Notes: generated by a model not told the origin, from the sequence alone. 64,000 nucleotides of DNA from Adineta vaga (GCA_021613535.1 CP075495.1:4216001-4280000); one strand, 5' to 3'; counted from the first letter of the stretch, positions 1,559 through 59,000 are shown. A program made the numbers and translations.

Positions 1559-2368
1559 ATGATGTTCATTGTAACTAATCTTCTAATATTATTTCTTGCC
1601 TTTCAAATCATCACTACTGATCGAGCTATTCGTCGTTTAACTTATAAACTCGATAGTGATATAACTGGATTTGTAGGTGATAATATAATTAATTATGATT
1701 TAACACGAATTGATTCCAGTAGTCCAATGTCAATACTTGAAATTGAAACTGAACAATGGGTACATGATTGCTGTTTTATGATTACTTCTCAACCTGTTCT
1801 TCGTATTCGTTTAAAACAAGATAATAATTATCCAAAAATTACTGCTTATTTACGTCTTCGTACACCACTTTCATCAATCATAATGACAGGTACAGGAACT
1901 ATTTCTACTACGAATGCCATACAATCGGATTCATTAATGATCGAAATATCAGGTACTTGTAAAGCACAATTGCAAGTAGAAATCACTTCGAAACTTGATG
2001 TTATTATTTCTGGTACGGGTCAAATAACTATGACTGGTAATGTCAAAGGTAATGGATACATTCGTTTGACTGGTATTGGTGAATTTGATGGTCGTGCATG
2101 TCCTATGGATACGGCCATTTTAGATGTTACTAGTGTTGGTACAGCATATATTGTTGGTAATCAAGCTGTTGATGTTGCTGTTGGAGGAGTAGGTCTTGTA
2201 TATTATCATGGACCATTAAGAAATCAACGTGTGAGTGGTCATGGATCAATTAATACATTGACGAATATTGATGGCAAATTATTACGATCATCAACTATAA
2301 CGATTAAAAAGTCGATGAGCTATTCTCTAATGATTTTTTTCTTGTATTTAGTGAATTTTCTATTGTAA
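1559..2368 (+). CDS. GIN-domain (DUF2807, autotransporter adhesin head-like beta-solenoid) protein with signal peptide and C-terminal hydrophobic tail
   Basis: Intronless 269-aa ORF with repeats of ISGTG-like motifs (MTGTGTI, ISGTCKA, ISGTGQI, LTGIGEF) ending in GVGLVYYHGP...VSGHGSI, typical of DUF2807. Both termini are hydrophobic. Confidence 0.75.
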   Translation: MMFIVTNLLILFLAFQIITTDRAIRRLTYKLDSDITGFVGDNIINYDLTRIDSSSPMSILEIETEQWVHDCCFMITSQPVLRIRLKQDNNYPKITAYLRLRTPLSSIIMTGTGTISTTNAIQSDSLMIEISGTCKAQLQVEITSKLDVIISGTGQITMTGNVKGNGYIRLTGIGEFDGRACPMDTAILDVTSVGTAYIVGNQAVDVAVGGVGLVYYHGPLRNQRVSGHGSINTLTNIDGKLLRSSTITIKKSMSYSLMIFFLYLVNFLL

Positions 2369-2583: not shown

Positions 2584-4175
2584 TCAAGATTTTCTCCATC
2601 GACGAGTACGAGTTTTCGATCGATTGTTATCATAATTCTCATTTTTGGTATCAATAATCGATGATGAAAGATTTTCTAATCGACAAAAACCTAAATTATA
2701 CGATCGAAAAACGAATGTGAAGAATCTGATTAAAACATACGTGTAGAAAAACGTGTACTGTAATGCTTGGATTCATCAACGGTAGGAGACGGTGTTTGTT
2801 CTCGAATTGATATTTCATTTTCTAAATAGATCAAATGATTTCATTCTACTCATTATTTAAACAAAAAACTTGAATTTACTTTTTATTCTCTTATTTCTTT
2901 GTTTTTTGTTATTAGTTTCAATGATGTAGACGGATTTTCGTTTACGTAAATTGATCATTGCTGGTTTTATTTGACTATTCGTTGATGTGGATCGATTTCG
3001 TTTTCGACCTTTCGTTCGATTAATTGACTGAGATTCATTTGTCATGGCAGAACGTGTTCGTGGTCGACATATCGATTCCGAAGTAACGAATGGCTTTCTA
3101 TAGATAAAGCAGAAAAAAAAATAAGCAATCTAATTTTCAAAGAAGAATACAAAATAAAATTCCTACTGTGAATAATTCTTTGACTGAATATCAAAATGTT
3201 CAATATCATCTTCATTGAGATATTGAAGAAGAAATGTATGACTAATTCGTTGAAGTGTTATCATTGGTTCGATCGATTCTAATGTTTCGTCCAGTTGATC
3301 GAATGGTGAAGAATTTTTTCTAATTGATTGAGATTGTTCATCTTGAAGAATTGTTGGAGAAAAATTAAGTTGTGCTGGAAATTTTGGTTGAGAATATATC
3401 GGTGATACTGCTCGTTCATTCGAAGATAATTCTAAAGTCGATAGATCAATTGATTCTTCTGCTTTGATTTCATAAGTATCAAGAGAAGGAATTGTATGAT
3501 CAGATTTTTCTGGAGAGCAATGAATTTGTGGCCATTCTTGTTTTACTGATGGAAATAGATCATCATTCTAAAATAATAACAATGTCATTTTTAAAATCCA
3601 TAGAAAAAATATGACTTACAGATAATTCTAAATGATTCTCATCTCGATAAAAGTCTGGAAAATCATTAGAAGTGATTACAGAATAGATACCTTCCCAGTA
3701 TTCATTTTCTTCGTACAACACTTTTTCAATGATACTACATTGCTCTTTGATAACAGTACGTATTTTTTCCATACGCTAAAAATAAATTTCATTATTTTTT
3801 TCAAAAAATTATAAAAATAAAAAGGCATTTTTTACTTTATTGAAATGATTTGATAATGATTCTGAACCGATCTCAATAAAATGATCCAAACTTCGAAATT
3901 TTCTCTCACGTTTTGTTATATTCGCATGTATTTCAGCTATTGCTTTTTCTATATGTATATTCCGAAGAGAAATAGCTTTTAATTGTTTATTCAATTGTAC
4001 TAAATATGAAATATTTAGAAAAAAAACTGGTATATAATTTGTTTAATACAGTACCATTGATGCTAATATCAATCAGTCTTCGAGCTTGACGATATTTAAT
4101 ACGGTTAATATTGAAGCGAGTTTGATTCCATGTTATTGGTATATGAAATACTTTTTGACTAGTACGAGGAAACAT
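2584..4175 (-). CDS. Uncharacterised 7-exon protein: N-terminal coiled coil, S/P-rich middle, basic C-terminus
   Basis: Small minus-strand ORFs join in frame through canonical GT..AG introns, from MFPRTSQK to ...SKTRTRRWRKS*. Confidence 0.65.
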
Positions 4176-35795: not shown

Positions 35796-38700
35796 GTTGC
35801 TGGGCAATATTGATTATGTTAGCTATCTAACAATTGTTATTGTCAACTAACGTCGCACTCCTTTTCCTATTTTCTCTCTTCTCTTATTTGACGGTCTTTT
35901 CAATAGTAGCGACCGACTCTTCCGTTCATATTTTAATACTTTATGAAGAAGAGAGAGAGAGAGAGAGAGAAAGGGAATGAGAGCCGTATGCGTGTGTGTG
36001 TGTTTTCTCTTGAATTTCTTTAAAGATTTGAGGCGCTCACTCAATTACATGTGCACGAGCTATCGTCAAATAATAATTCATTCTTAAAAAGAAAAAAAAA
36101 CGATGAATAATCATAGTGATTTAACATACTGTTGTTCAATACTATATTATTCAGAAGGAAAGTTAGGAAAATATTTTAATAATTCCTTTCTGACTAATAA
36201 ATATTAATCGAATTTGAAGTCGTTTATTTTATTTTTTCAATTCTTCTCTATTTATTGTCGGTATATGAGATTTGAACTTCAATCTTGTGTATCGCGTAGA
36301 AACAAATGAAAGAGGTGTGAAAAAAATTTATTAGTAAATGAATAATTGTTTATTGAATATGGATTTTATTTTGACTTTTCTATTGAAAATCTTTACAAGA
36401 GTCATTGCTCATATACTTCAACATTAATTGAAAACAACATATACTGAATGGGAAGAAATATCGTATATACATATATATATCAGATTTCGAGAAAAATAAA
36501 TCGATGCCATGTTGTCTCGCATATGCATTTTATAGAAGCACTTGTATGGATATAATCATTCTCAATAAAAATCGTGTGATCGAATGATGATTTTTTAAAA
36601 AGCAATCCTGCAGCATATTCTTGATTGTTTTATGACAATGAGAGCTAAAATTTTATTTTTCTATGCCATTTGTATTGATAATTTTTTTGATCGTATTGCA
36701 CTTAGTACAACAAAAATCTTTCTGTACGTCTGTGTTCTTACAGGAAAATGTTTTAATAGAAAGATTTAGAACTGTGTTAAATAAGCCTTTCTCATGTATG
36801 CATAGTCTTAGGATGATTGTCAAATGTGATGATATTGTAGTATTGATCTTAGCTGGATACGACTAAGAGAAAAAATTCAAAAATACTTTCTCTATTGATT
36901 AAATATTGATATTATATTTGATACATAGAATAGGAAGCAAATAAATCTGTTAATTTTATTTGAACAGTCATTGCAGTATTGCATGGATTACGTATAGCAC
37001 CTGTAAATGTGAACAGTTTATAATTTTTCAATATGTGACATACTTTATGAGCATTGTGTTTGACATTACACATTGATGTATCATAGATGTGAATCAACGA
37101 AAACTCCTACGCCTCAATAGTGACAGTATAGGTCGCATTTACGATTAAAGATGACCTTCCCATTAGTTTGTCATTGACAACAACCATTCGGACAAGGGAT
37201 TTATTAATCTTCATCGTTAGTACAAATGAAGCGGTTACCAATAGATGAAGCATTACATAATTGATTTCGAAGAGCCGTATGATTTAGAATGTTAGCTATA
37301 ATAAAGATGCATCAAGTTAATAATAATTTTCATTTTGCTTATCTTCATTTTTTTCTATTCATTCATCAAGAAACTATACTGCAAGATGTTGTCTAAAAAG
37401 GAAGTTATTCACTTATAAACTTACTTGTTTCATGTATCGTTCTCATGTGTTCTAAACAGGAATCATTTTTATTACAACGCAATGTAATTGAACGGCTGGT
37501 ATTATTATTTCTTGGTGATAATACCATATTATGTTCAATGATGATGTTATATTTTAATATATCCGTTTAATTATGAAACTCTTCATAAAATGCAACATCT
37601 ACTTTATCCGAGGCATAGCCGAGAGTCAATACAGCAGCACGTGCACCATTGGTAGTTGGGTATGACAGACTAATTCGTTATAATAATAATGTTCGAAAGT
37701 GGTTTCAATATTTCAGAATATGCTGTACATTTAGAGACGAACTTCCCATGAACAATTGGCATATTATTTCGAAAACAGCCAATAACCCAAAACATCTTCA
37801 TAATGAAAACTTCAGTTCTATCAGTAATGTTTCATTTTGAACCTGTTTTTTATTCGTGTATTTTCTTGATTTGAACAAAATTATGTTTTTAAACAATATC
37901 AAATTTAAAGCTTCAGGTACAGATATCACGAACCAAGGATTGGTGAGACGTTAACCGAATTCTTTGTATTATTAGTTTGTTAATATCTCCAAGACTATTG
38001 TCAAACTAATGTATAATCGATTTTCATCTCAAGAATATGAATGAAAACAAAGTAAGAGAATGGGAACATAAAATATTCTAGAAACTCAAGTAATTTTGAA
38101 ACGCATTAATCTTTCATGTAGTTATCAGAGCGTCACGTGTATTGTCTATGAAGTTAAACCAATATATCTATGCATTTATTTGTTTTTCTATAAATTTTAC
38201 AATGTAGTTTTATAAATTATCATTAGTCATAAAATGATGTTTAATAAATCAAATGGATCATGTTAATCTTATCCATCTCGTAAATTAATTTCAAAAGAAG
38301 TGTACTAGAATTGTTTATGTGTCACACATTGTTTTGTTGAATACTAGTTCGATGATTGGATCTTTATATTATAGAAATAAATATTGTGCGAACGCTGACG
38401 TTTCGGAATATTGTAATAGAAAATAAAGAAAAGTGTAAATGCAAAATAAGATTTTTCTAGGTGAAAAATGGAATTCTTTCGTGAGTAATTATGTTAGTCG
38501 TCTTAGAATATTTTTCTCCTATTCTTTTCGGTTGAATAAGAAGGAAGATGATGACTGTTACTATGGATATAAAGAATAAAGAAAAAAGCTTCGTCGGGAA
38601 GAACTAATGAAGGAAGAAAACATATGAAAAATATTTATTATTTATTGAACTAGAGCAATATCACGATGCACTCGAATAATATTATTTATCATTAGAAGAA

Positions 38701-39097
38701 GAGGTAAATTTGTATTTCGAAGTGTAGTATGTCAATATGAAAGACGTTGTCTAATGATTTTTTCGCAATATCGATACTGTTCATAATTTGGTAACAATGA
38801 CGTATTGAGTATTCTCTGATTCGAACTTTACATATTTTTCTTTAGTTTTTAGAAATACTCTTGTCTCTCGTCATACGTAAATGTTTTTACTTAGTGAAAT
38901 GGACTGTGAGTTACCATTACCAACAATATACATTATATAAATATATTCTACGAATACTTATATTCTTCATCTTAGTTATGTTTTATCATGCACTGCTAGA
39001 GTAAAGCATTTAAAAGATAAAATTTACGAAATTATACACATGCTTATGTTCTATTTAGGTTTATCATACTAAACATAATTCTATATTTTAGATCAAA

Positions 39098-39619
39098 ATG
39101 CCACGCTGTTGTGGTGGTTGTTTTAATCTTTGCAAAGAATTTAAAGCGTAGGTTTATACACTTTTCATATGAATCATTTCAATAATGTATTGATTTTGTA
39201 TTAGATTTGCCTTACGAGGCAATATGTTTGATTTAGCAGTTGGAATTATCATTGGTACTGCTTTCTCCAGTGTTGTTCAATCACTTGTTGATGATATTAT
39301 TACTCCACCACTTGGTCTACTCATCGGTGGTGTTGATTTGGTTAATTTAACTGCTTCGATTCCAAATTTTGTCTATCAAAATCAACCAGCAGTTGTAATT
39401 CGTTATGGAAGATTTATTCAACGAATTATCTATTTATTGCTCGTTGCTTTGGCATTATTTTTCATTATCAAATTAATTAACAAATTACATAAAGTCGCAT
39501 CAAAAAAGAAAGTCGCCGTTGAACAAATGGTTGTCAAAGAATTCAGTGATGAAGTTAAAGTTTTACACCAAATTCGTGATTTATTAGCACAGAAAACAAT
39601 TCATAGTCATCAACAATAA
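39098..39619 (+). CDS. mscL: Large-conductance mechanosensitive channel MscL, copy 1 (intron 39148-39204)
   Basis: Spliced: MPRCCGGCFNLCKEFKA|FALRGNMFDLAVGIIIGTAFSSVVQSLVDDIITPPLGLLIGGVD...IRYGRFIQ...FFIIKLINKL...EVKVLHQIRDLL. Collinear with E. coli MscL. Confidence 0.95.
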
Positions 39620-40194
39620 GAAGAAGAAGAAGAAAAAGAACATTAGACATTATATTTTGTTAAGAACGAAGTTTGCATAAGAATATTAGTAGACTGTTTG
39701 ATAACAATGATCAAGGGTGATAATTATGTTCTTCTTACATTTCTTCAAATATACTTGTCAAATAACACAAGACTCTTTTGTTTCAATAAAATCGTACACT
39801 ACATGTTCGAAAACAACTAGAATAAGATTTAAATTCGATTTTTCGTATCATGATGGAAATCATTTGTAAAGATGTGATATGATAATTTCGTTGAACAATG
39901 AGCGAAAAGTTGAAACGAATGAATCATATATTAAACGATAATCTTTGATGTAAAATGAGTCTTTAAATACAAATATTGCTTTTTTTACATTTCTGTAGAC
40001 ATATTTATGTGTCGATCTCATTCATTTTGCAATTCTTCGAGGCAAATATTTTATCGCAATAAAAGGGATAGATTGACAGTTTGCAAGCATCTTCTAAAGG
40101 ATAGGAATTATTTATAAAAAGTTCACTTTATTCTTGAATCTTTTCATCGACATTTACTATCAATGAGTTTCGGTCATTAATGTTATATCTTTAG

Positions 40195-40731
40195 ATGAAA
40201 ATCCAAAAAGTATGTCTTTTTGGTAAAGCATTTTGCCGAGAATTTAAAGCGTAGGTGTTATTTAAGATTTTCTTTGTTTATTAATATATTTGTTTTATGG
40301 TTCATACTAGATTTGCTTTACAAGGCAATGTATTTGATTTAGCTGTTGGTATTATCATTGGTACTGCTTTTTCCAATGTTGTTAAATCTCTTGTTGAAGA
40401 TATAGTCACTCCACCATTTGGTTTTCTTTTGGGTGGAGTTGATTTTGCTAATTTAACGATTAAAATGCGCAATTTTATATATACAGATCAACCTCCTGTT
40501 GTTATACGTTATGGAAAATTCATTCAAGAAATTCTCTATTTACTGATTATGGCATTAGTATTATTCTTTCTTATTAAAGGAATTAATAAAATACATGAAA
40601 TAGCATCTAAACGTTTGTTGGAAGAAGGCAAGAAAAAAGTTAAAGAATTAAGTGACGAAGCGAAAATTTTAACAGAAATACGAGATATATTGGCAAAACA
40701 AAATCCAATGATTGAAGAAGTTATGTTGTAA
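40195..40731 (+). CDS. mscL: Large-conductance mechanosensitive channel MscL, copy 2 (intron 40251-40310)
   Basis: Spliced: MKIQKVCLFGKAFCREFKA|FALQGNVFDLAVGIIIGTAFSNVVKSLVEDIVTPPFG...YGKFIQ...EAKILTEIRDIL. Confidence 0.95.
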
Positions 40732-40935
40732 ACAAAGATTTAGAATTTTTGTATTTATTAAATAAAGAACATATTTTCTAGAGAGAGTACATAAAACATT
40801 ATTAGAATAACTTTTCGCCTATCAATTTAATTTAGTATATGACAAATAAAAAACGAAAGTATCAGTATGGCGCTTTGTTACCAAGCTCATTCATTTCATT
40901 TGCATTTTTGTTTTATTTTGTTCTATAATAAAAAC

Positions 40936-41718
40936 ATGTCGAACGAATCAAATCGATTAATTGACGAAGAAATCGAACGAATTTTTAATGGAAAAACAGT
41001 AATTACAACAGAACGATTTAAAGAAGTTTTTGAAGAATTTCAAAACGATCGTACTCCTAGTGCCAATCGCGGTCGTGGTGCAATGTCTCGTCCAACTCCT
41101 ATACATGATGATGTAAAACAAAAAATTAATCTAATCTTAGGGCCTGAATTAGATAAAATCAAATCAAATACAATTACAAAAGAACAAGCGAAAACAATTC
41201 TATTAGCATGGAGAAATCGATCGAAAGAAGAATGGCATTCTCACATGTCTAATCACATTCAATCATCTATTAAAGATGAAATGAAGAAACGAAATATTCA
41301 TGAAGTGAATGCTGAGCAAGCACATGATATAGTTCGAATGATTTGTCATCAAATGTCTGAATCACATGTTGGTACACCATCCGTCTTAGATGATAGTAAT
41401 AAACATGAATTTTTAAATGAATTTAAAACTAAACATGGCACAAGTAAAATCGATGCTGATGAAGTTTGGGAAATGATAAAAGTTTTTGATAAAAAACAAC
41501 ATGATAAAATGGGTTGTTGTGAGAAAAATTCTGAATTGAATAAAGAGTCAGAGAAGAAATGGAATGAATTATTCAATGAACAATATAAAGAATTATTTGG
41601 TGATCAGAATAATACAAAAATAAATGAACAACAATTAGGAGAATTAGCAAATCGAATGAAAGAAAAAAATCGACAAGATTGTATACAACATCCAGGAAAA
41701 CGTTTCTGTCAACATTAA
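40936..41718 (+). CDS. Intronless hydrophilic helical protein (~260 aa) with five degenerate EF-hand-like repeats
   Basis: Long ORF with coding-like composition; recurring x-I/V-[T/N/D]-x-E/D/Q motif between predicted helices. Confidence 0.7.
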   Translation: MSNESNRLIDEEIERIFNGKTVITTERFKEVFEEFQNDRTPSANRGRGAMSRPTPIHDDVKQKINLILGPELDKIKSNTITKEQAKTILLAWRNRSKEEWHSHMSNHIQSSIKDEMKKRNIHEVNAEQAHDIVRMICHQMSESHVGTPSVLDDSNKHEFLNEFKTKHGTSKIDADEVWEMIKVFDKKQHDKMGCCEKNSELNKESEKKWNELFNEQYKELFGDQNNTKINEQQLGELANRMKEKNRQDCIQHPGKRFCQH

Positions 41719-42183
41719 TCAAACTTTCGACTATAATGTCTATTTCTTAAAACAATGAATAGAAATTATTATATGAAAAGAAACAATCTTTTGATTTAAA
41801 GCTGATTTATCGAATATCATTTCATTGAAACTTCAAGCTTTCTCTTTTTTTTGCAACAATAATAATTTGTGACTGATCACAATCAGTATCGTGTTTATAT
41901 ATATATATATTTTTTTTTTGTAATATAGAATAAAAGAACAAATAAAGAAGAAACAGGACAACGTGTCTACAAGATATGTTACTTTTTCGAATCAAAAAAA
42001 ATGTACAATGAACAAATCTTTCTTTCAAGATGTTGACTCATTAACAATAGTGTCTGTCTTTTTTTTGCAATGTTTTGCATTAAATATATAGGTAAAGAAT
42101 TACATGACTAGGTTTTTTTTCCGAGAGAAATAATGAGAATGAGAAACGAAAATATAAATATAAAATATCAGTAAAGATTATAT

Positions 42184-43450
42184 TTATCCCATTCCAAGTG
42201 GTGATGCCGGTTGAGTTTGTTGAGAAACAATATTATTACCAGATGATCCTTGTTGAGAACTATTTGTATTTGTTGTAACTGGTGTTTCAAGATTCAGTAA
42301 TAATTGTGATAACCATTTTTTTGTTGATTGATCTTCTTTAAGAACAGCATCCTAAAATAATCCAAGTAGTAAAAGTTAAAAAAAAAAGTCTTTTTTTCTT
42401 CGTAATATTTACAAATGTATGATCTTTGAGACAATCCGGAAGACATGAACGAAGTGCTTCACGAGCACGTGCATTATCGGATAAACGTAAATAGCAACGA
42501 ATGATATGTTTCAATAATCTTCCACTTGCTTCTTTTTGCTAATTAAAAAAGAAAAATGAGAAATTATAGAAAATCTTTGTTTTAGTTCTCCTACTTGTTG
42601 TAAAACCATTCGTCCTAAGACCATAGCAACATGTGAAAATCGATCAAATGTTTGACAAATATAATTTAAACCACAATCATCAGCAAGAATTTTTTGTAAA
42701 ATAAATGTTGCAACTGTTTTTGATAATTCACTACCTGATTGCATTATACGTAATGATAATGGAATAATTTCCGTTGTTAATAAGAAATTAATCACTTCGG
42801 TTTCCAGTTTTAACAAGAGCACCAATGACACCTAAGGATGTTAAACGGAGATATTCAAATGGTCGTGTTGATGATTTTGTATTTAAAAATGGATAGAGAA
42901 AGAGAGGAATATTTGCTTGAATAAAAAGCGAACGAGTTTCAGGATGAGATGCTATACATTGAAGTAATGCTAATGCATTACATACACGATTCGATTGTTG
43001 AGCTGTTAATGTTGGAGGTGTTATATAGGGATAGACCGAACTAAAATAAAAATATTATTCTTATTATAAGAGATATTTTTGAAAGTATATGAAATGAACA
43101 TACATAACTTCATGTAAAAGAACAGCAACTGATCCAAACGAATGCCAAAGTAAAACAGCTAAATCAACGACTTTTTCACGTTTACGACTCAATTCCATAA
43201 GTGCATTTTCACGCGTTGTTGATGATAATAATTCGGTTATCCAACAAGCAATACGTTCAGAAGAAACGGGTGTATCATTTGCTGGATTATTCGCACCTGC
43301 TGTTTGTTGTTGACCTGCATTTGCACTGGAATTATTTGATGTTTGGCCAGTAGCACCAGCCGATGGAGGACCACTACCACCACCACTACCATTCGATGTA
43401 ACAATAGGATTTGGAGAAGGTGTTGACGATGTTGATGATGCCATGTTCAT
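42184..43450 (-). CDS. CNOT9: CCR4-NOT subunit 9 (RCD1/RQCD1), 4 exons, with an apparent frameshift near 42805
   Basis: [98 protein letters not shown]. Confidence 0.95.
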
Positions 43451-44054: not shown

Positions 44055-44669
44055 TCAAGTTGAGATTCCAATTTGATCTAAAACGCCTACATCTTTAAAC
44101 CAAGCAATCAGTTCATTGAAATTGATACTTCCATCATGTCCACGATCAATTTCTTCGAATTGACAAGCTTGATGTTCATGTTCATCAATAATATGATGAC
44201 GAATTAAATCTTTTTTCATTTTATCGAATTCTTTCTTATTCAATACACCGTGATTATGTTTATCATAAGAACGAAATATTTCAGCTATATGACATACCAA
44301 TTGAGTTTGATGTGTATTCATACGAAGATGTTCAAAACGAGATGTTGTTCGCCACCATTCAGTAAATTCTTTATAATCAATTTTTCCATTTCCATCTTTA
44401 TCTATCAATGTTAATGCCCATTGAAGTTCTTCATCAGATAAATAATAACCCATATCATAGCAAAGTGAACGAAGTTCATCACGTGAAATTGAACCTGAGC
44501 AAAAAAAGAACATACAATGATCTTCATAGATCGAAAGTGAATTGTACATACCATTTTTATCCGAATCATATTTATTAAACATTAATTCAGATATTGGTTT
44601 TGTACTTCCACCAAATGCAAAGCAACTTGGTGCAAATGATGTACGTTGATTCTTATTAATCACATCCAT
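44055..44669 (-). CDS. Calmodulin-like protein with four EF-hands (in-frame intron 44495-44551)
   Basis: Loops DSDKNGSISRDE (after splicing), DKDGNGKIDYKE, DKHNHGVLNKKE, DRGHDGSINFNE. Confidence 0.9.
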   Translation of the reverse strand: MDVINKNQRTSFAPSCFAFGGSTKPISELMFNKYDSDKNGMYNSLSIYEDHCMFFFCSGSISRDELRSLCYDMGYYLSDEELQWALTLIDKDGNGKIDYKEFTEWWRTTSRFEHLRMNTHQTQLVCHIAEIFRSYDKHNHGVLNKKEFDKMKKDLIRHHIIDEHEHQACQFEEIDRGHDGSINFNELIAWFKDVGVLDQIGIST

Positions 44670-56002: not shown

Positions 56003-59000
56003 ATGTCTGCATGGGGAAAACGACAAGGTAAATAAGTGATATACATATTGCTTTTAAATCACTAGGTTCTTTCTTATTCGAATGAATAGCTCGAGCTGAT
56101 ACAAAACCAAATGTAGGATCTGCAACTACCACAAATGGTACAGCAGCACCAAAGAAATCTGCTTGGGGTGCTCCGCCAGGAGTATCACCAGTTGCTCCTG
56201 CTCCTGTGACTTCAACAGAACGGTCTTCAAGTGCATTTCCAACACCACGTGAAGCGATGGAAAATCTTTCTTTAGACTCTCCCTCTTCACATACGACTGT
56301 ACGTTCTCAAAGTGCTCGTCCATCAAATCGCCGTCCGCAATTACATTCAGCTGTTCCTGAATCAGCTGTCTTAACTCCTGTGCGTCGTCCTGATGAAGGT
56401 GGAAAAGTTGGTAAAACAGTGGATGTGTACACAAATCATTTTCGTGTTCATATCGATGCTGGTGTTGTTAACCAATATGATATTGAAATTTACATGATTG
56501 GTCGTGATAAAAAACCGAGATTAGCACGAAAAGATGAACGATGGGAAACAGTTCAACGCATTGCTAAACGTGAAAAAAATTTCCCGATTATTTGGTATGA
56601 TGAAGGCAAGACAATTTATACGAAAGAATTATTAACTGATTTTACTAAACCATTACAAGTAACATTTAAAATGAATAATGAAGATAAAACATTTCAATTT
56701 CAAGTGTTAAATCTTGTTCGACAAGAAAAAATTCGAGATATTTTTGATTTTATTGAAAAGAAAACATCGATACGACCAAGAGATTCAATTCGAATTATAG
56801 AAACGCTTTTCAAACAACGGGCAAGAAATGATTTAATTTCTTTTCGAAATCAATTCTATGATCGAAAACAAAAACTAGATGATCTTGGTAAGTATACCAT
56901 TGAATTTTTCATGAGATTTAATGTATACTTTTATTTTTAGGTGATGGTCGTGGTATGGCAAATGGATTCTATCAAGCACTTTTTCTTACTCAATTAGGGC
57001 CAACTTTAAATATTAATCTTGCATTTACATGTTTTTATATGCCATTAAATTTTGTTGAATTTGCGACGAAATATCTTCGTAAAGATATTACTAAAGGTTT
57101 AAGTGAAATTGAATTACAAGGTTTTCGTCGTATTGTTCGTAATATGTTGAGTATGTTGATTTAAAAACTCTTGTTCATTTATTTTCTATATTTATCGATA
57201 ATATTTAGTTGAAACTATTCATACTGGTCGAGATATTCGTTATCGTATTCGTGGTTTTGGTTTACCAGCAAATCAAATTACTTTTGTACGTGGTGCTAGC
57301 GATGACGCTGGTGATGCATCATTAGGTGAAAAAATTAGTGTTGCAGATTTTTTTGCTGAAAAATATCAAAAATTAAAATATCCAAATTTGCCATGTATCG
57401 ATGGAATGAGTGGTACTCAAAAACGTGCAAATTGGTTACCAATGGAAGTTGTCAGAGTAATTGATGATGTATTTTAAAGAAAAGATTCTTCTTGAGATTA
57501 TCTTCTTTAGCTTGTACCATGGGAACGTTCATTGAAACCATTAGATAGTGTTCAACGAGCATTAGTCACAAAGAAATCAGTTATTAAACCTGAACAACGT
57601 TATGATCAAATTATGAAAGTTGTACAAAATCGTCAATTCGATACTGATCCATATTTACAAGAATTGAATATTAAAGTCGATAGCAAAGAAATGCTTCAAG
57701 TCAAAGCACGAATTTTACCACCACCAGAAGTAAAATATCGTGGTCAAGGTTCTTCAGAAATAGCTGAACGTGTCAATTTCGGTAAATGGACAATACGTAA
57801 TCGTTTTTATACAACACGTGATATTAATAAATGGGGTATGATTTATTTCGGTTCCAAACCAACACAAGATGTTATTCAAACACTCAAAGATTTTGAAATT
57901 CGTTTACCATCTGTAAATATATTTTTTTCTTGTTTAATCTATTGACGAAAAAGAAAGAAGTATTTTTCTTTAGTTATTACAACGTTATGGTATTAACATG
58001 AAATCTAAGCCAATAACTGTTGCTAAACCTGCAACGAAAGAAGAAATTGAAAATACATTAAATAATGGCAGTAAAGATGGTTGGCAATTGACTATTGTAA
58101 TATTAAATAATACAACTGATAATGTTTATGATTATGTTAAACAATGTGGCAACCAACGATATGGTTTAGTAACACAATGTGTTAGTTATCAAGCATTGGA
58201 AAGAAATATTGGCAAACTTGATATGTGTAAGGAGGAAAATCTTTATCAAGAGATTTTGATTTGATGACATAATACTATTTTTTTTCTAGATGTACAAAAT
58301 TTAAGTCAAAAGATTAATGCTAAAATGGGATGCATCAATGGAGTTGTTAATCTCAAAGCAGCATTAAGTCGACCATCAAATGAAGACCTTTTTATGTTTT
58401 TCGGAGCTGACGTAAGTCAAAATTCTAGATTACCGAATGAAGATGTCATCGATAGTTTTGATAATAATTATTGTATAGATATCTTTCAGTTCTGATTGTT
58501 GTTTCACAGATTGAAACTAAAGAAAGTTTTGAAAATTATTTAGTATTGCAGTTATCTCTGAGAAAATCTTCTATATGTTTGATTGTTTTTTTAGGTCACA
58601 CATACAACTTGTTCAGCTGAACGTCCATCCATTGCAGCTGTTGTTGGTTCACGTGATCCAACCAATTCACTCTACGCAGCTCGTCTTTGCGAACGTATGT
58701 TATTTAAAATAATAATATATGGTCGAACTTTATCTTTTTTTCTATTCAGAATATCCAAAATTAGGTCGTTGTTCGATGGAAATTATAAAAGATTTAGATA
58801 AAATGGTTGTCGATCTTCTTCAATTATTTGCACAATCATGTGGTAATCGTTTACCAAATAAGATTGTCTTCTATCGTGATGGTGTTGATGATGGTCAATA
58901 TCAAAAAGTACTTGATAATGAAGTTGCAAAGATTAAACAAGCATTTCGAAGTAAAGTCTATCTCTCGAAATAAAATAAAGAAATTCTCCTCTGACTTTTT

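Follow-up and report, generated by a model that had tools for sequence, protein, structure and literature searches.

The large-conductance mechanosensitive channel MscL is generally regarded as belonging to walled microbes and as lacking in animals. Its homologs in fungi and oomycetes are nuclear genes, presumably of bacterial ancestry. The supposed absence from animals underlies two uses of MscL, one as a target for antibiotics and the other as an orthogonal mechanical switch for mammalian cells. Adineta vaga, a bdelloid rotifer, is a desiccation-tolerant animal with a high load of foreign genes. Horizontally acquired genes account for approximately 8% of its genes (PMC10809525; PMC4632278; PMC3499245). 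Here, we describe a tandem pair of intron-containing MscL genes (copy 1 and copy 2) in a 64,000-nucleotide stretch of the A. vaga genome (C2:4216001-4280000; hereafter the window), located approximately 4.2 Mb into the 16.27 Mb chromosome. The explanation that, as a whole, we consider likely is that the pair derives from a transferred bacterial mscL and acts as a predicted tension valve at the cell surface.

The E. coli channel (PF01741; 28oa and 9tiu) and the bdelloid proteins belong to the same length class and share the order of their parts, the gate residues, and the IRDLL motif. Unlike the E. coli gene, the bdelloid genes are nuclear, split by an intron, and members of a multigene family at approximately 50% identity to the E. 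coli protein; their products also differ in having approximately 10 extra N-terminal residues with two to five cysteines and an N-L-T sequon in the outer loop. Exon 2 translations of copy 1 and copy 2 matched the Pfam profile PF01741 over profile positions 8-122 of 123 (E = 1.5e-33 and 4.6e-34; 116.2 and 117.9 bits), and all seven MscL loci in A. vaga exceed the Pfam cut-off of 27.4 bits. The two exon 2 translations are 63% identical to each other. Copy 1 was aligned with E. coli MscL chain 28oa (E = 7.9e-30) over residues 10-138 with short gaps only, where F10 in the alignment numbering is the first residue of exon 2, and the S1 helix, first transmembrane helix (TM1), outer loop, second transmembrane helix (TM2), and C-terminal helix were found in the E. 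coli order. Both genes, as read from their sequence, encode full-length MscL subunits.

An initial annotation of this DNA had listed G14, L19, G22, and G26 (E. coli numbering) as kept, V17F, V23I, A27T, and G30S as changed in both copies, and K31 as lost, all of which was borne out by the 28oa alignment; D18, A20, and F29 are also kept, and position 31 is serine in copy 1 (K31S) and asparagine in copy 2 (K31N). The TM1 gate motif is present in both proteins, with Q13 in copy 2. The IRDLL bundle motif ascribed to the pair was found in copy 1, and copy 2 reads IRDIL. Across 85 bdelloid sequences, G14, L19, A20, G26, and F29 are 100% conserved, and G22 is 97% conserved. We considered whether the gate substitutions are adaptive changes that re-tuned the gate and rejected this: I23 (30%), T27 (18%), T or S at position 30 (37%), and N31 (7%) are common among 250 neighboring bacterial MscLs and therefore represent ordinary family variation. 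Position 17 is L, I, F, or V in bdelloids, and F17 is confined to this pair and its orthologs.

Contigs from four runs (X1, X5, X11, and X13) of four independent studies were compared with window positions 38300-42300; the runs are classed as RNA by an index guess only, and the contigs carry no transcript level or strand. The joint 39147^39205 in copy 1 was exact in contigs of three runs (X1, X11, and X13), and the joint 40250^40311 in copy 2 was exact in contigs of all four, each across a GT..AG intron. No contig from the four runs covered either intron, the spacer at 39798-40195, or the region 40867-41718. Intron-less contigs without intergenic cover are the pattern expected of RNA, and there is no intron-less MscL copy in the A. 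vaga genome, where the intron is present at all seven loci; splicing is therefore not mimicked by a DNA copy. Both genes are spliced and transcribed. The initial annotation had placed a phase 2 intron between EFKA and FAL in each of two complete open reading frames (ORFs), and its coordinates, phase, and position proved exact; the spliced transcripts that it had proposed looking for were also found. The copy 1 transcript extends from 39090 to approximately 39797 and the copy 2 transcript from 40196 or before to 40785 or 40864, each ending shortly past an AATAAA. The spliced copy 1 product is 100% identical to I4U23_007114 [Adineta vaga] (record P0001).

Exon 1 provides 16 codons plus 2 nucleotides (nt) from the ATG at 39098 in copy 1, encoding the Cys cluster and the first part of the S1 helix, and 18 codons plus 2 nt from the ATG at 40195 in copy 2; the phase is 2 in each. 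Both introns begin with GTAGGT, end with TAG, and fall at the same codon position. The KEFKA at the end of exon 1 corresponds to the KEFREFA start of E. coli MscL; therefore, the intron interrupts sequence homologous to the bacterial gene. Positions 39090-39091 are the AG of an acceptor-like TTTTAG ahead of the copy 1 ATG, and two of the three contigs that start at 39090 carry 4 and 7 extra unaligned letters. An acceptor-like (T)nAG precedes the ATG by 0-14 nt in every intact A. vaga MscL gene (including loci L002, L005, and L006). Together, these features would fit spliced-leader trans-splicing. Single-base differences between the RNA contigs and the assembly were seen at 39544, 39568, 39588, 40504, and 40605; by codon count, three of them lie at third positions and are synonymous, and the remaining two each replace a residue conservatively (A to V in the tail of copy 1; I to V in the copy 2 motif VVIRYG). 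These are probably strain or allele differences.

Ratios of nonsynonymous to synonymous substitution (dN/dS) were estimated by the NG86 method. Copy 1 gave 0.23 against its ortholog on a metagenomic bdelloid contig, L008 (bootstrap 95%, 0.14-0.35), copy 2 gave 0.34 against its own L008 ortholog (0.21-0.51), and the two copies compared with each other gave 0.33 (0.19-0.51), well below the value near 1 that had been named as a refuting outcome. Bootstrap upper bounds were all 0.61 or less, and the pair that includes a pseudogene (see below) was among the highest ratios of the A. vaga copies. Maximum-likelihood estimates were 0.07-0.12, with dS saturated. Judged by these substitution ratios, the window pair is under purifying selection.

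The pair is not a singular event but part of a bdelloid-wide family. A search of the A. vaga genome (100.8 Mb, six contigs) revealed seven MscL loci on four chromosomes: in addition to the C2 pair, C3 carries a tandem pair, C5 one gene, and C6 a further pair. The second C6 locus (G000:C6:5022831-5023217; L022 ~1500-1920) is a pseudogene with a TGA at the R13 codon and a gate changed from DLAIG to NSAIS, in which the intron site can still be read, as can most of the remaining frame. Named MscLs also occur in Adineta steineri, A. ricciae, Rotaria sordida, R. magnacalcarata, two Silwood Rotaria species, and Didymodactylos carnosus, and UniRef labels the bdelloid proteins "Large-conductance mechanosensitive channel." Many metagenome matches of 131-135 residues begin at an internal methionine of exon 2 and are therefore bdelloid exon 2 ORFs called by prokaryotic gene finders.

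The L008 contig (177 kb, GC 31%) carries MscL, MscL, an ORF, CNOT9, and an EF-hand gene in the same order as the window, an arrangement kept in L008/L009; the proposed linkage of the pair to CNOT9 is thus repeated in a second bdelloid. Both L008 MscL genes are intact, and they share the intron site with all seven A. vaga loci, in agreement with the earlier view that the intron is older than the duplication. In A. steineri there is a separate ortholog for each of the two copies; copy 1 also has Rotaria orthologs, and copy 2 has its ortholog in L008. Separate orthologs of each copy mean that the tandem duplication predates the split from the L008 bdelloid, and from these relationships it is most likely older than the Adineta-Rotaria split. 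The C5 gene was considered as a homoeologous partner of the C2 pair and rejected because none lies at the matching C5 site: the C5 CNOT9 counterpart (13.18 Mb) has no adjoining MscL, and the C5 MscL is located at 0.26 Mb.

An exhaustive profile-free search of 1.84 billion representatives returned five clusters at E ≤ 1e-30, and the tree places all of them in the bdelloid clade; P0121 is a metagenome protein, and the other four are bdelloid proteins by name or clearly resemble such proteins. The bdelloid clusters, at E below 1e-32, are separated by a gap from a continuum at approximately 45-52% identity, in which the sequences examined are of bacterial type, including E. coli-like ones. In a maximum-likelihood tree of 74 rows, the 20 bdelloid rows, including Didymodactylos, form one clade (support 100/99; stem 0.59); the bootstrap was not fully settled, and a quick tree supported the same clade at 97. 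A scan of named bacterial genomes with a single protein contributed six loci found through chance word matches (≤44% identical), which served as labeled tree rows only. Of the phylogeny proposed earlier, which was to set the pair against bacterial and fungal MscLs, the tree covers the bacterial half and shows one bdelloid clade among bacterial MscLs. No sequence from an animal other than a bdelloid was found in or next to the clade, with monogonont, seisonid, and acanthocephalan genomes not directly searched.

The nearest named neighbors are metagenome-assembled genomes of Chlorobiales/Chloroherpetonaceae and Paceibacterota, with Saccharibacteria and Chloroflexota also represented. The MscLs of Patescibacteria (Saccharibacteria and Paceibacterota) and Chlorobiales are 45-56% identical to the bdelloid proteins and occupy the same poorly supported region of the tree, and Saccharibacteria-type MscLs share the loop pattern NL.I.IPNF and the AVIRYG motif with them; they differ in having no Cys cluster, and the sister relation has a support of 61/18 or lower. 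No sister relation is supported in the 74-row tree, so no donor lineage is named. The best nr hits for A. vaga MscL are E. coli and Enterobacter, not a fungus, and no Brachionus protein ranks ahead of them (PMC10809525 Table S4). Since these best hits are Enterobacteriaceae and the named neighbors are bacterial, a fungal or oomycete route is made unlikely, though only indirectly. The simplest reading of the sequence relationships is one bacterial mscL transfer into the bdelloid stem.

The D. carnosus gene bears on the order of later events. Its locus reads through the intron site (...CKIGCCSNFCGEFKSFIARGNVIDLAVG...; L023:4045-4578), and the uninterrupted ORF (ATG at 4045; L023:4023-4578 region) encodes the Cys cluster together with a complete S1 helix. 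The Cys-rich N terminus therefore predates the Didymodactylos split, and the intron was either gained later in the line leading to Adineta and Rotaria or lost in Didymodactylos. The idea that the intron is as old as the acquisition does not survive this comparison unless such a loss took place. A database model of the D. carnosus protein (P0197; N terminus MYENRSYDGVSS followed by RGN) has a different, doubtful intron at this site and looks mis-spliced. In our reading, an ancestor of the sampled bdelloids (Didymodactylos, Adineta, and Rotaria) took up one bacterial mscL, and after transfer the gene acquired a Cys-rich N-terminal extension. A phase 2 spliceosomal intron was then gained within the S1 helix coding region, or lost in Didymodactylos, and repeated duplication followed, with the copy 1/copy 2 tandem staying beside CNOT9.

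Two features that set the bdelloid proteins apart had been missed by the initial annotation: a cluster of cysteines at the N terminus and an N-L-T sequon in the loop. All 16 of 16 spliced bdelloid models have two to five cysteines of the CCxNFC type within the ten residues before KEFKA, and the cluster is absent from the bacterial relatives that were read. Located beside the membrane-lying S1 helix, it is a likely S-acylation site by prediction. The sequon, placed where the outer loop begins, occurs in 93% of bdelloid versus 14% of bacterial sequences and is a likely predicted site of N-glycosylation, which would imply a secretory route to the cell surface. In the mechanism that we propose, the products assemble as pentameric pores gated by membrane tension, like bacterial MscL, and would open on abrupt swelling, either during rehydration after anhydrobiosis or under hypo-osmotic shock in ephemeral water films, to release small solutes before the membrane ruptures. 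The acylated Cys cluster would tie the tension-sensing S1 helix to the inner leaflet, and the protein, its outer loop glycosylated, would pass through the secretory pathway to the cell surface.

Published expression data touch on this proposal. Moris et al. (PMC10809525, Table S4) list one A. vaga MscL (FUN_024790-T1) in the core rehydration response, with a log2 fold change of 1.36 (false discovery rate 5e-8) at 2.5 h and no significant change at 0 h or 8 h, and note its function as "regulation of osmotic pressure changes." The main text of that paper does not mention FUN_024790, no main-text treatment of bdelloid MscL was found in the searchable literature, and the supplements of two other papers contain nothing on MscL. 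The rehydration role suggested at the outset thus gains indirect backing from the induction of one paralog, a gene that is not assignable to either copy. The pair probably forms a working tension-gated channel, whereas a protective role on rehydration or under hypo-osmotic stress is an even call.

Several points weigh against this surface tension valve. Bacterial MscL opens near the lytic tension of a walled cell under turgor, and animal cells are wall-less. FUN_024790, which follows an older numbering, was not mapped to any of the seven loci, including this pair, and its induction is modest (approximately 2.6-fold). The sequon, at 14% of bacterial relatives, may be inherited rather than adaptive. 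Because the tree is without fungal and oomycete MscLs, it makes a eukaryote-to-rotifer route unlikely only indirectly. Synonymous change (dS) is close to saturation or past it for most pairs, which makes the dN/dS values approximate, although none approaches 1. Finally, a co-fold run of three copy 1 and two copy 2 chains (exon 2 parts only) scored 0.07 beside a mark of 0.34; it is listed here for completeness and counts neither way.

The alternative that survives best, if at a clear remove, is that the channels reside in an internal membrane (mitochondria, endoplasmic reticulum, or osmoregulatory vesicles), where their task would be to ease the swelling of organelles or to let out stored solutes. 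Golgi and endosomal membranes also receive proteins that are sorted there by S-acylated Cys clusters, and the existence of seven loci suggests specialization by tissue or compartment, both of which speak for such a location. The proteins have no N-terminal presequence, exon 1 adding only approximately 10 residues before the S1 helix, and the N-x-T sequon in the loop fits a secretory route, which tells against mitochondria without separating the endoplasmic reticulum or Golgi from the cell surface. We regard an internal location as unlikely.

It is less probable again that the tandem paralogs are obligate partners in a heteropentamer, retained as a pair since neither would work alone. The two genes are still adjacent although their duplication most likely predates the Adineta-Rotaria split, both are found in the same whole-animal RNA runs, and tandem pairs also exist on C3 and C6. 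However, bacterial MscL works as a homopentamer, C5 holds a single intact copy and the partner on C6 is a pseudogene, so a lone copy can persist, and adjacency is the default outcome of tandem duplication.

A new function is, by a narrow step, the more doubtful still: a pore controlled by redox state or metals through the Cys cluster, or the regulated release of solutes or proteins around anhydrobiosis, with tension not the main stimulus. The conserved CCxNFC-type cluster lies directly before S1 and is missing from the bacterial relatives, and, from the known architecture of MscL, a pentamer would carry five such clusters in a ring around its cytoplasmic mouth. Against this, conservation at the gate and in TM1 is like that of bacterial channels gated by tension, and the substitutions stay within bacterial variation. 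The last alternative, that the ORFs are bacterial contamination or a mis-assembly and do not belong to the rotifer, draws on the typically bacterial nature of MscL and on the bacterial identity of its nearest non-rotifer relatives, but it is refuted by spliced transcripts and conserved gene order, that is, by spliceosomal introns removed in the RNA of four studies, a GC content (28%) like that of the window, a place on a 16.3 Mb chromosome where CNOT9 and further eukaryotic genes are its neighbors, the same gene order in another bdelloid, and seven intron-bearing loci on four chromosomes, and we consider it practically excluded.

Returning to the surface tension valve, its most extended form is that MscL has been refitted for wall-less membranes, through acylated cysteines, a glycosylated loop, and paralogs with different thresholds or tissues, as part of the machinery by which cells survive explosive swelling during rehydration. 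We put this forward tentatively, as a prediction from sequence features that is more probably wrong than right. If true, this would make the family the first MscL system native to an animal, and nature would have provided a test of lipid-mediated force gating in an animal membrane that contains cholesterol.

Other acquired genes of bdelloids resemble the MscL family in non-metazoan origin, host integration, gained introns, expression, enrichment in the rehydration response, and conservation across genera. MscL differs in being a membrane channel rather than an enzyme and in how it is recorded: the published A. vaga table has an empty horizontal gene transfer (HGT) column for FUN_024790 despite enterobacterial nr hits in its row (PMC10809525 Table S4), which leaves a clear bacterial-type gene unflagged. 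It is already known that these genes are annotated as MscL in databases, and they have been noted once in a supplement. The expanded bdelloid-wide family with its single origin, the conservation of the tandem pair, the order in which the intron was gained and the N terminus extended, and the two eukaryote-type sequence additions appear undescribed. A transcribed, maintained, and expanded animal MscL family is a candidate molecular part of rehydration tolerance. It is also a natural experiment in which a bacterial membrane protein has been adapted to eukaryotic biogenesis, with intron gain and likely sites of lipidation and glycosylation, and it offers ready-made variants for gating studies in animal lipids. 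The weight of the finding is limited in that bdelloids carry thousands of foreign genes and databases already call these proteins MscL.

Table 1. Features of the MscL locus and its surroundings, in window coordinates
Feature	Position	Strand	Remarks
5' untranslated region (UTR) of MscL copy 1	39090..39097	+	contig matches of X1, X11, and X13 all begin at 39090
MscL copy 1 exon 1 (50 nt)	39098..39147	+	MPRCCGGCFNLCKEFK plus 2 nt of Ala codon
Copy 1 intron	39148..39204	+	57 nt, GT..AG, phase 2; skipped in X1, X11, and X13 contigs
MscL copy 1 exon 2	39205..39619	+	TM1 gate, N-L-T loop, TM2, C-terminal IRDLL helix, stop
Copy 1 3' UTR	39620..39797	+	AATAAA 39785-39790; contig ends 39794-39798 in four runs
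MscL copy 2 exon 1 (56 nt)	40195..40250	+	MKIQKVCLFGKAFCREFK plus 2 nt; AG immediately 5' of ATG
Copy 2 intron	40251..40310	+	60 nt, GT..AG, phase 2; skipped in X1, X5, X11, and X13 contigs
MscL copy 2 exon 2, stop included	40311..40731	+	PF01741, E = 4.6e-34
Copy 2 3' UTR	40732..40864	+	AATAAA 40761-40766; contig ends 40785 (X1, X5) or 40864 (X11)
Conserved ORF, no Pfam match	40936..41718	+	part of conserved gene order, separate from the channel
CNOT9 (Rcd1) exons	42511..43450	-	PF04078, E = 9e-32 and 2.3e-11; same place and strand in L008, L009
EF-hand protein gene	44055..44669	-	PF00036, PF13499; same position in L008, L009
Argonaute N domain	56206..56940	+	outer flank of the pair

The surroundings of the pair are those of an animal chromosome. 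GC content is uniform across the window (28-33%), and the MscL locus matches the remainder. CNOT9 is an animal housekeeping gene that anchors the MscL locus in the host genome and, together with the EF-hand and Argonaute neighbors, the spliced RNA, and the conserved order, it upholds the earlier view of metazoan flanks and no contamination. A gene for the glycine-cleavage H protein is also among the outer neighbors in the window. The ORF between copy 2 and CNOT9 is single-copy in the A. vaga genome and shares 53% identity with its positional counterpart in L008 (11427-12215). The second CNOT9 copy, the homoeologue of the one in the window, at C5:13180456-13180677 (+), has a TGA within the matched exon stretch, which may be an intron boundary or the mark of a broken copy. 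A scan for bacterial promoters and terminators showed no enrichment; such a scan is inapplicable to a eukaryotic gene. Elsewhere in the window, a 269-amino-acid ORF at 1559-2368 (+) matched DUF2807 (PF10988, putative auto-transporter adhesin, head GIN domain; E = 3.8e-18), which we take to be a mainly bacterial domain, and this ORF may be another foreign gene.

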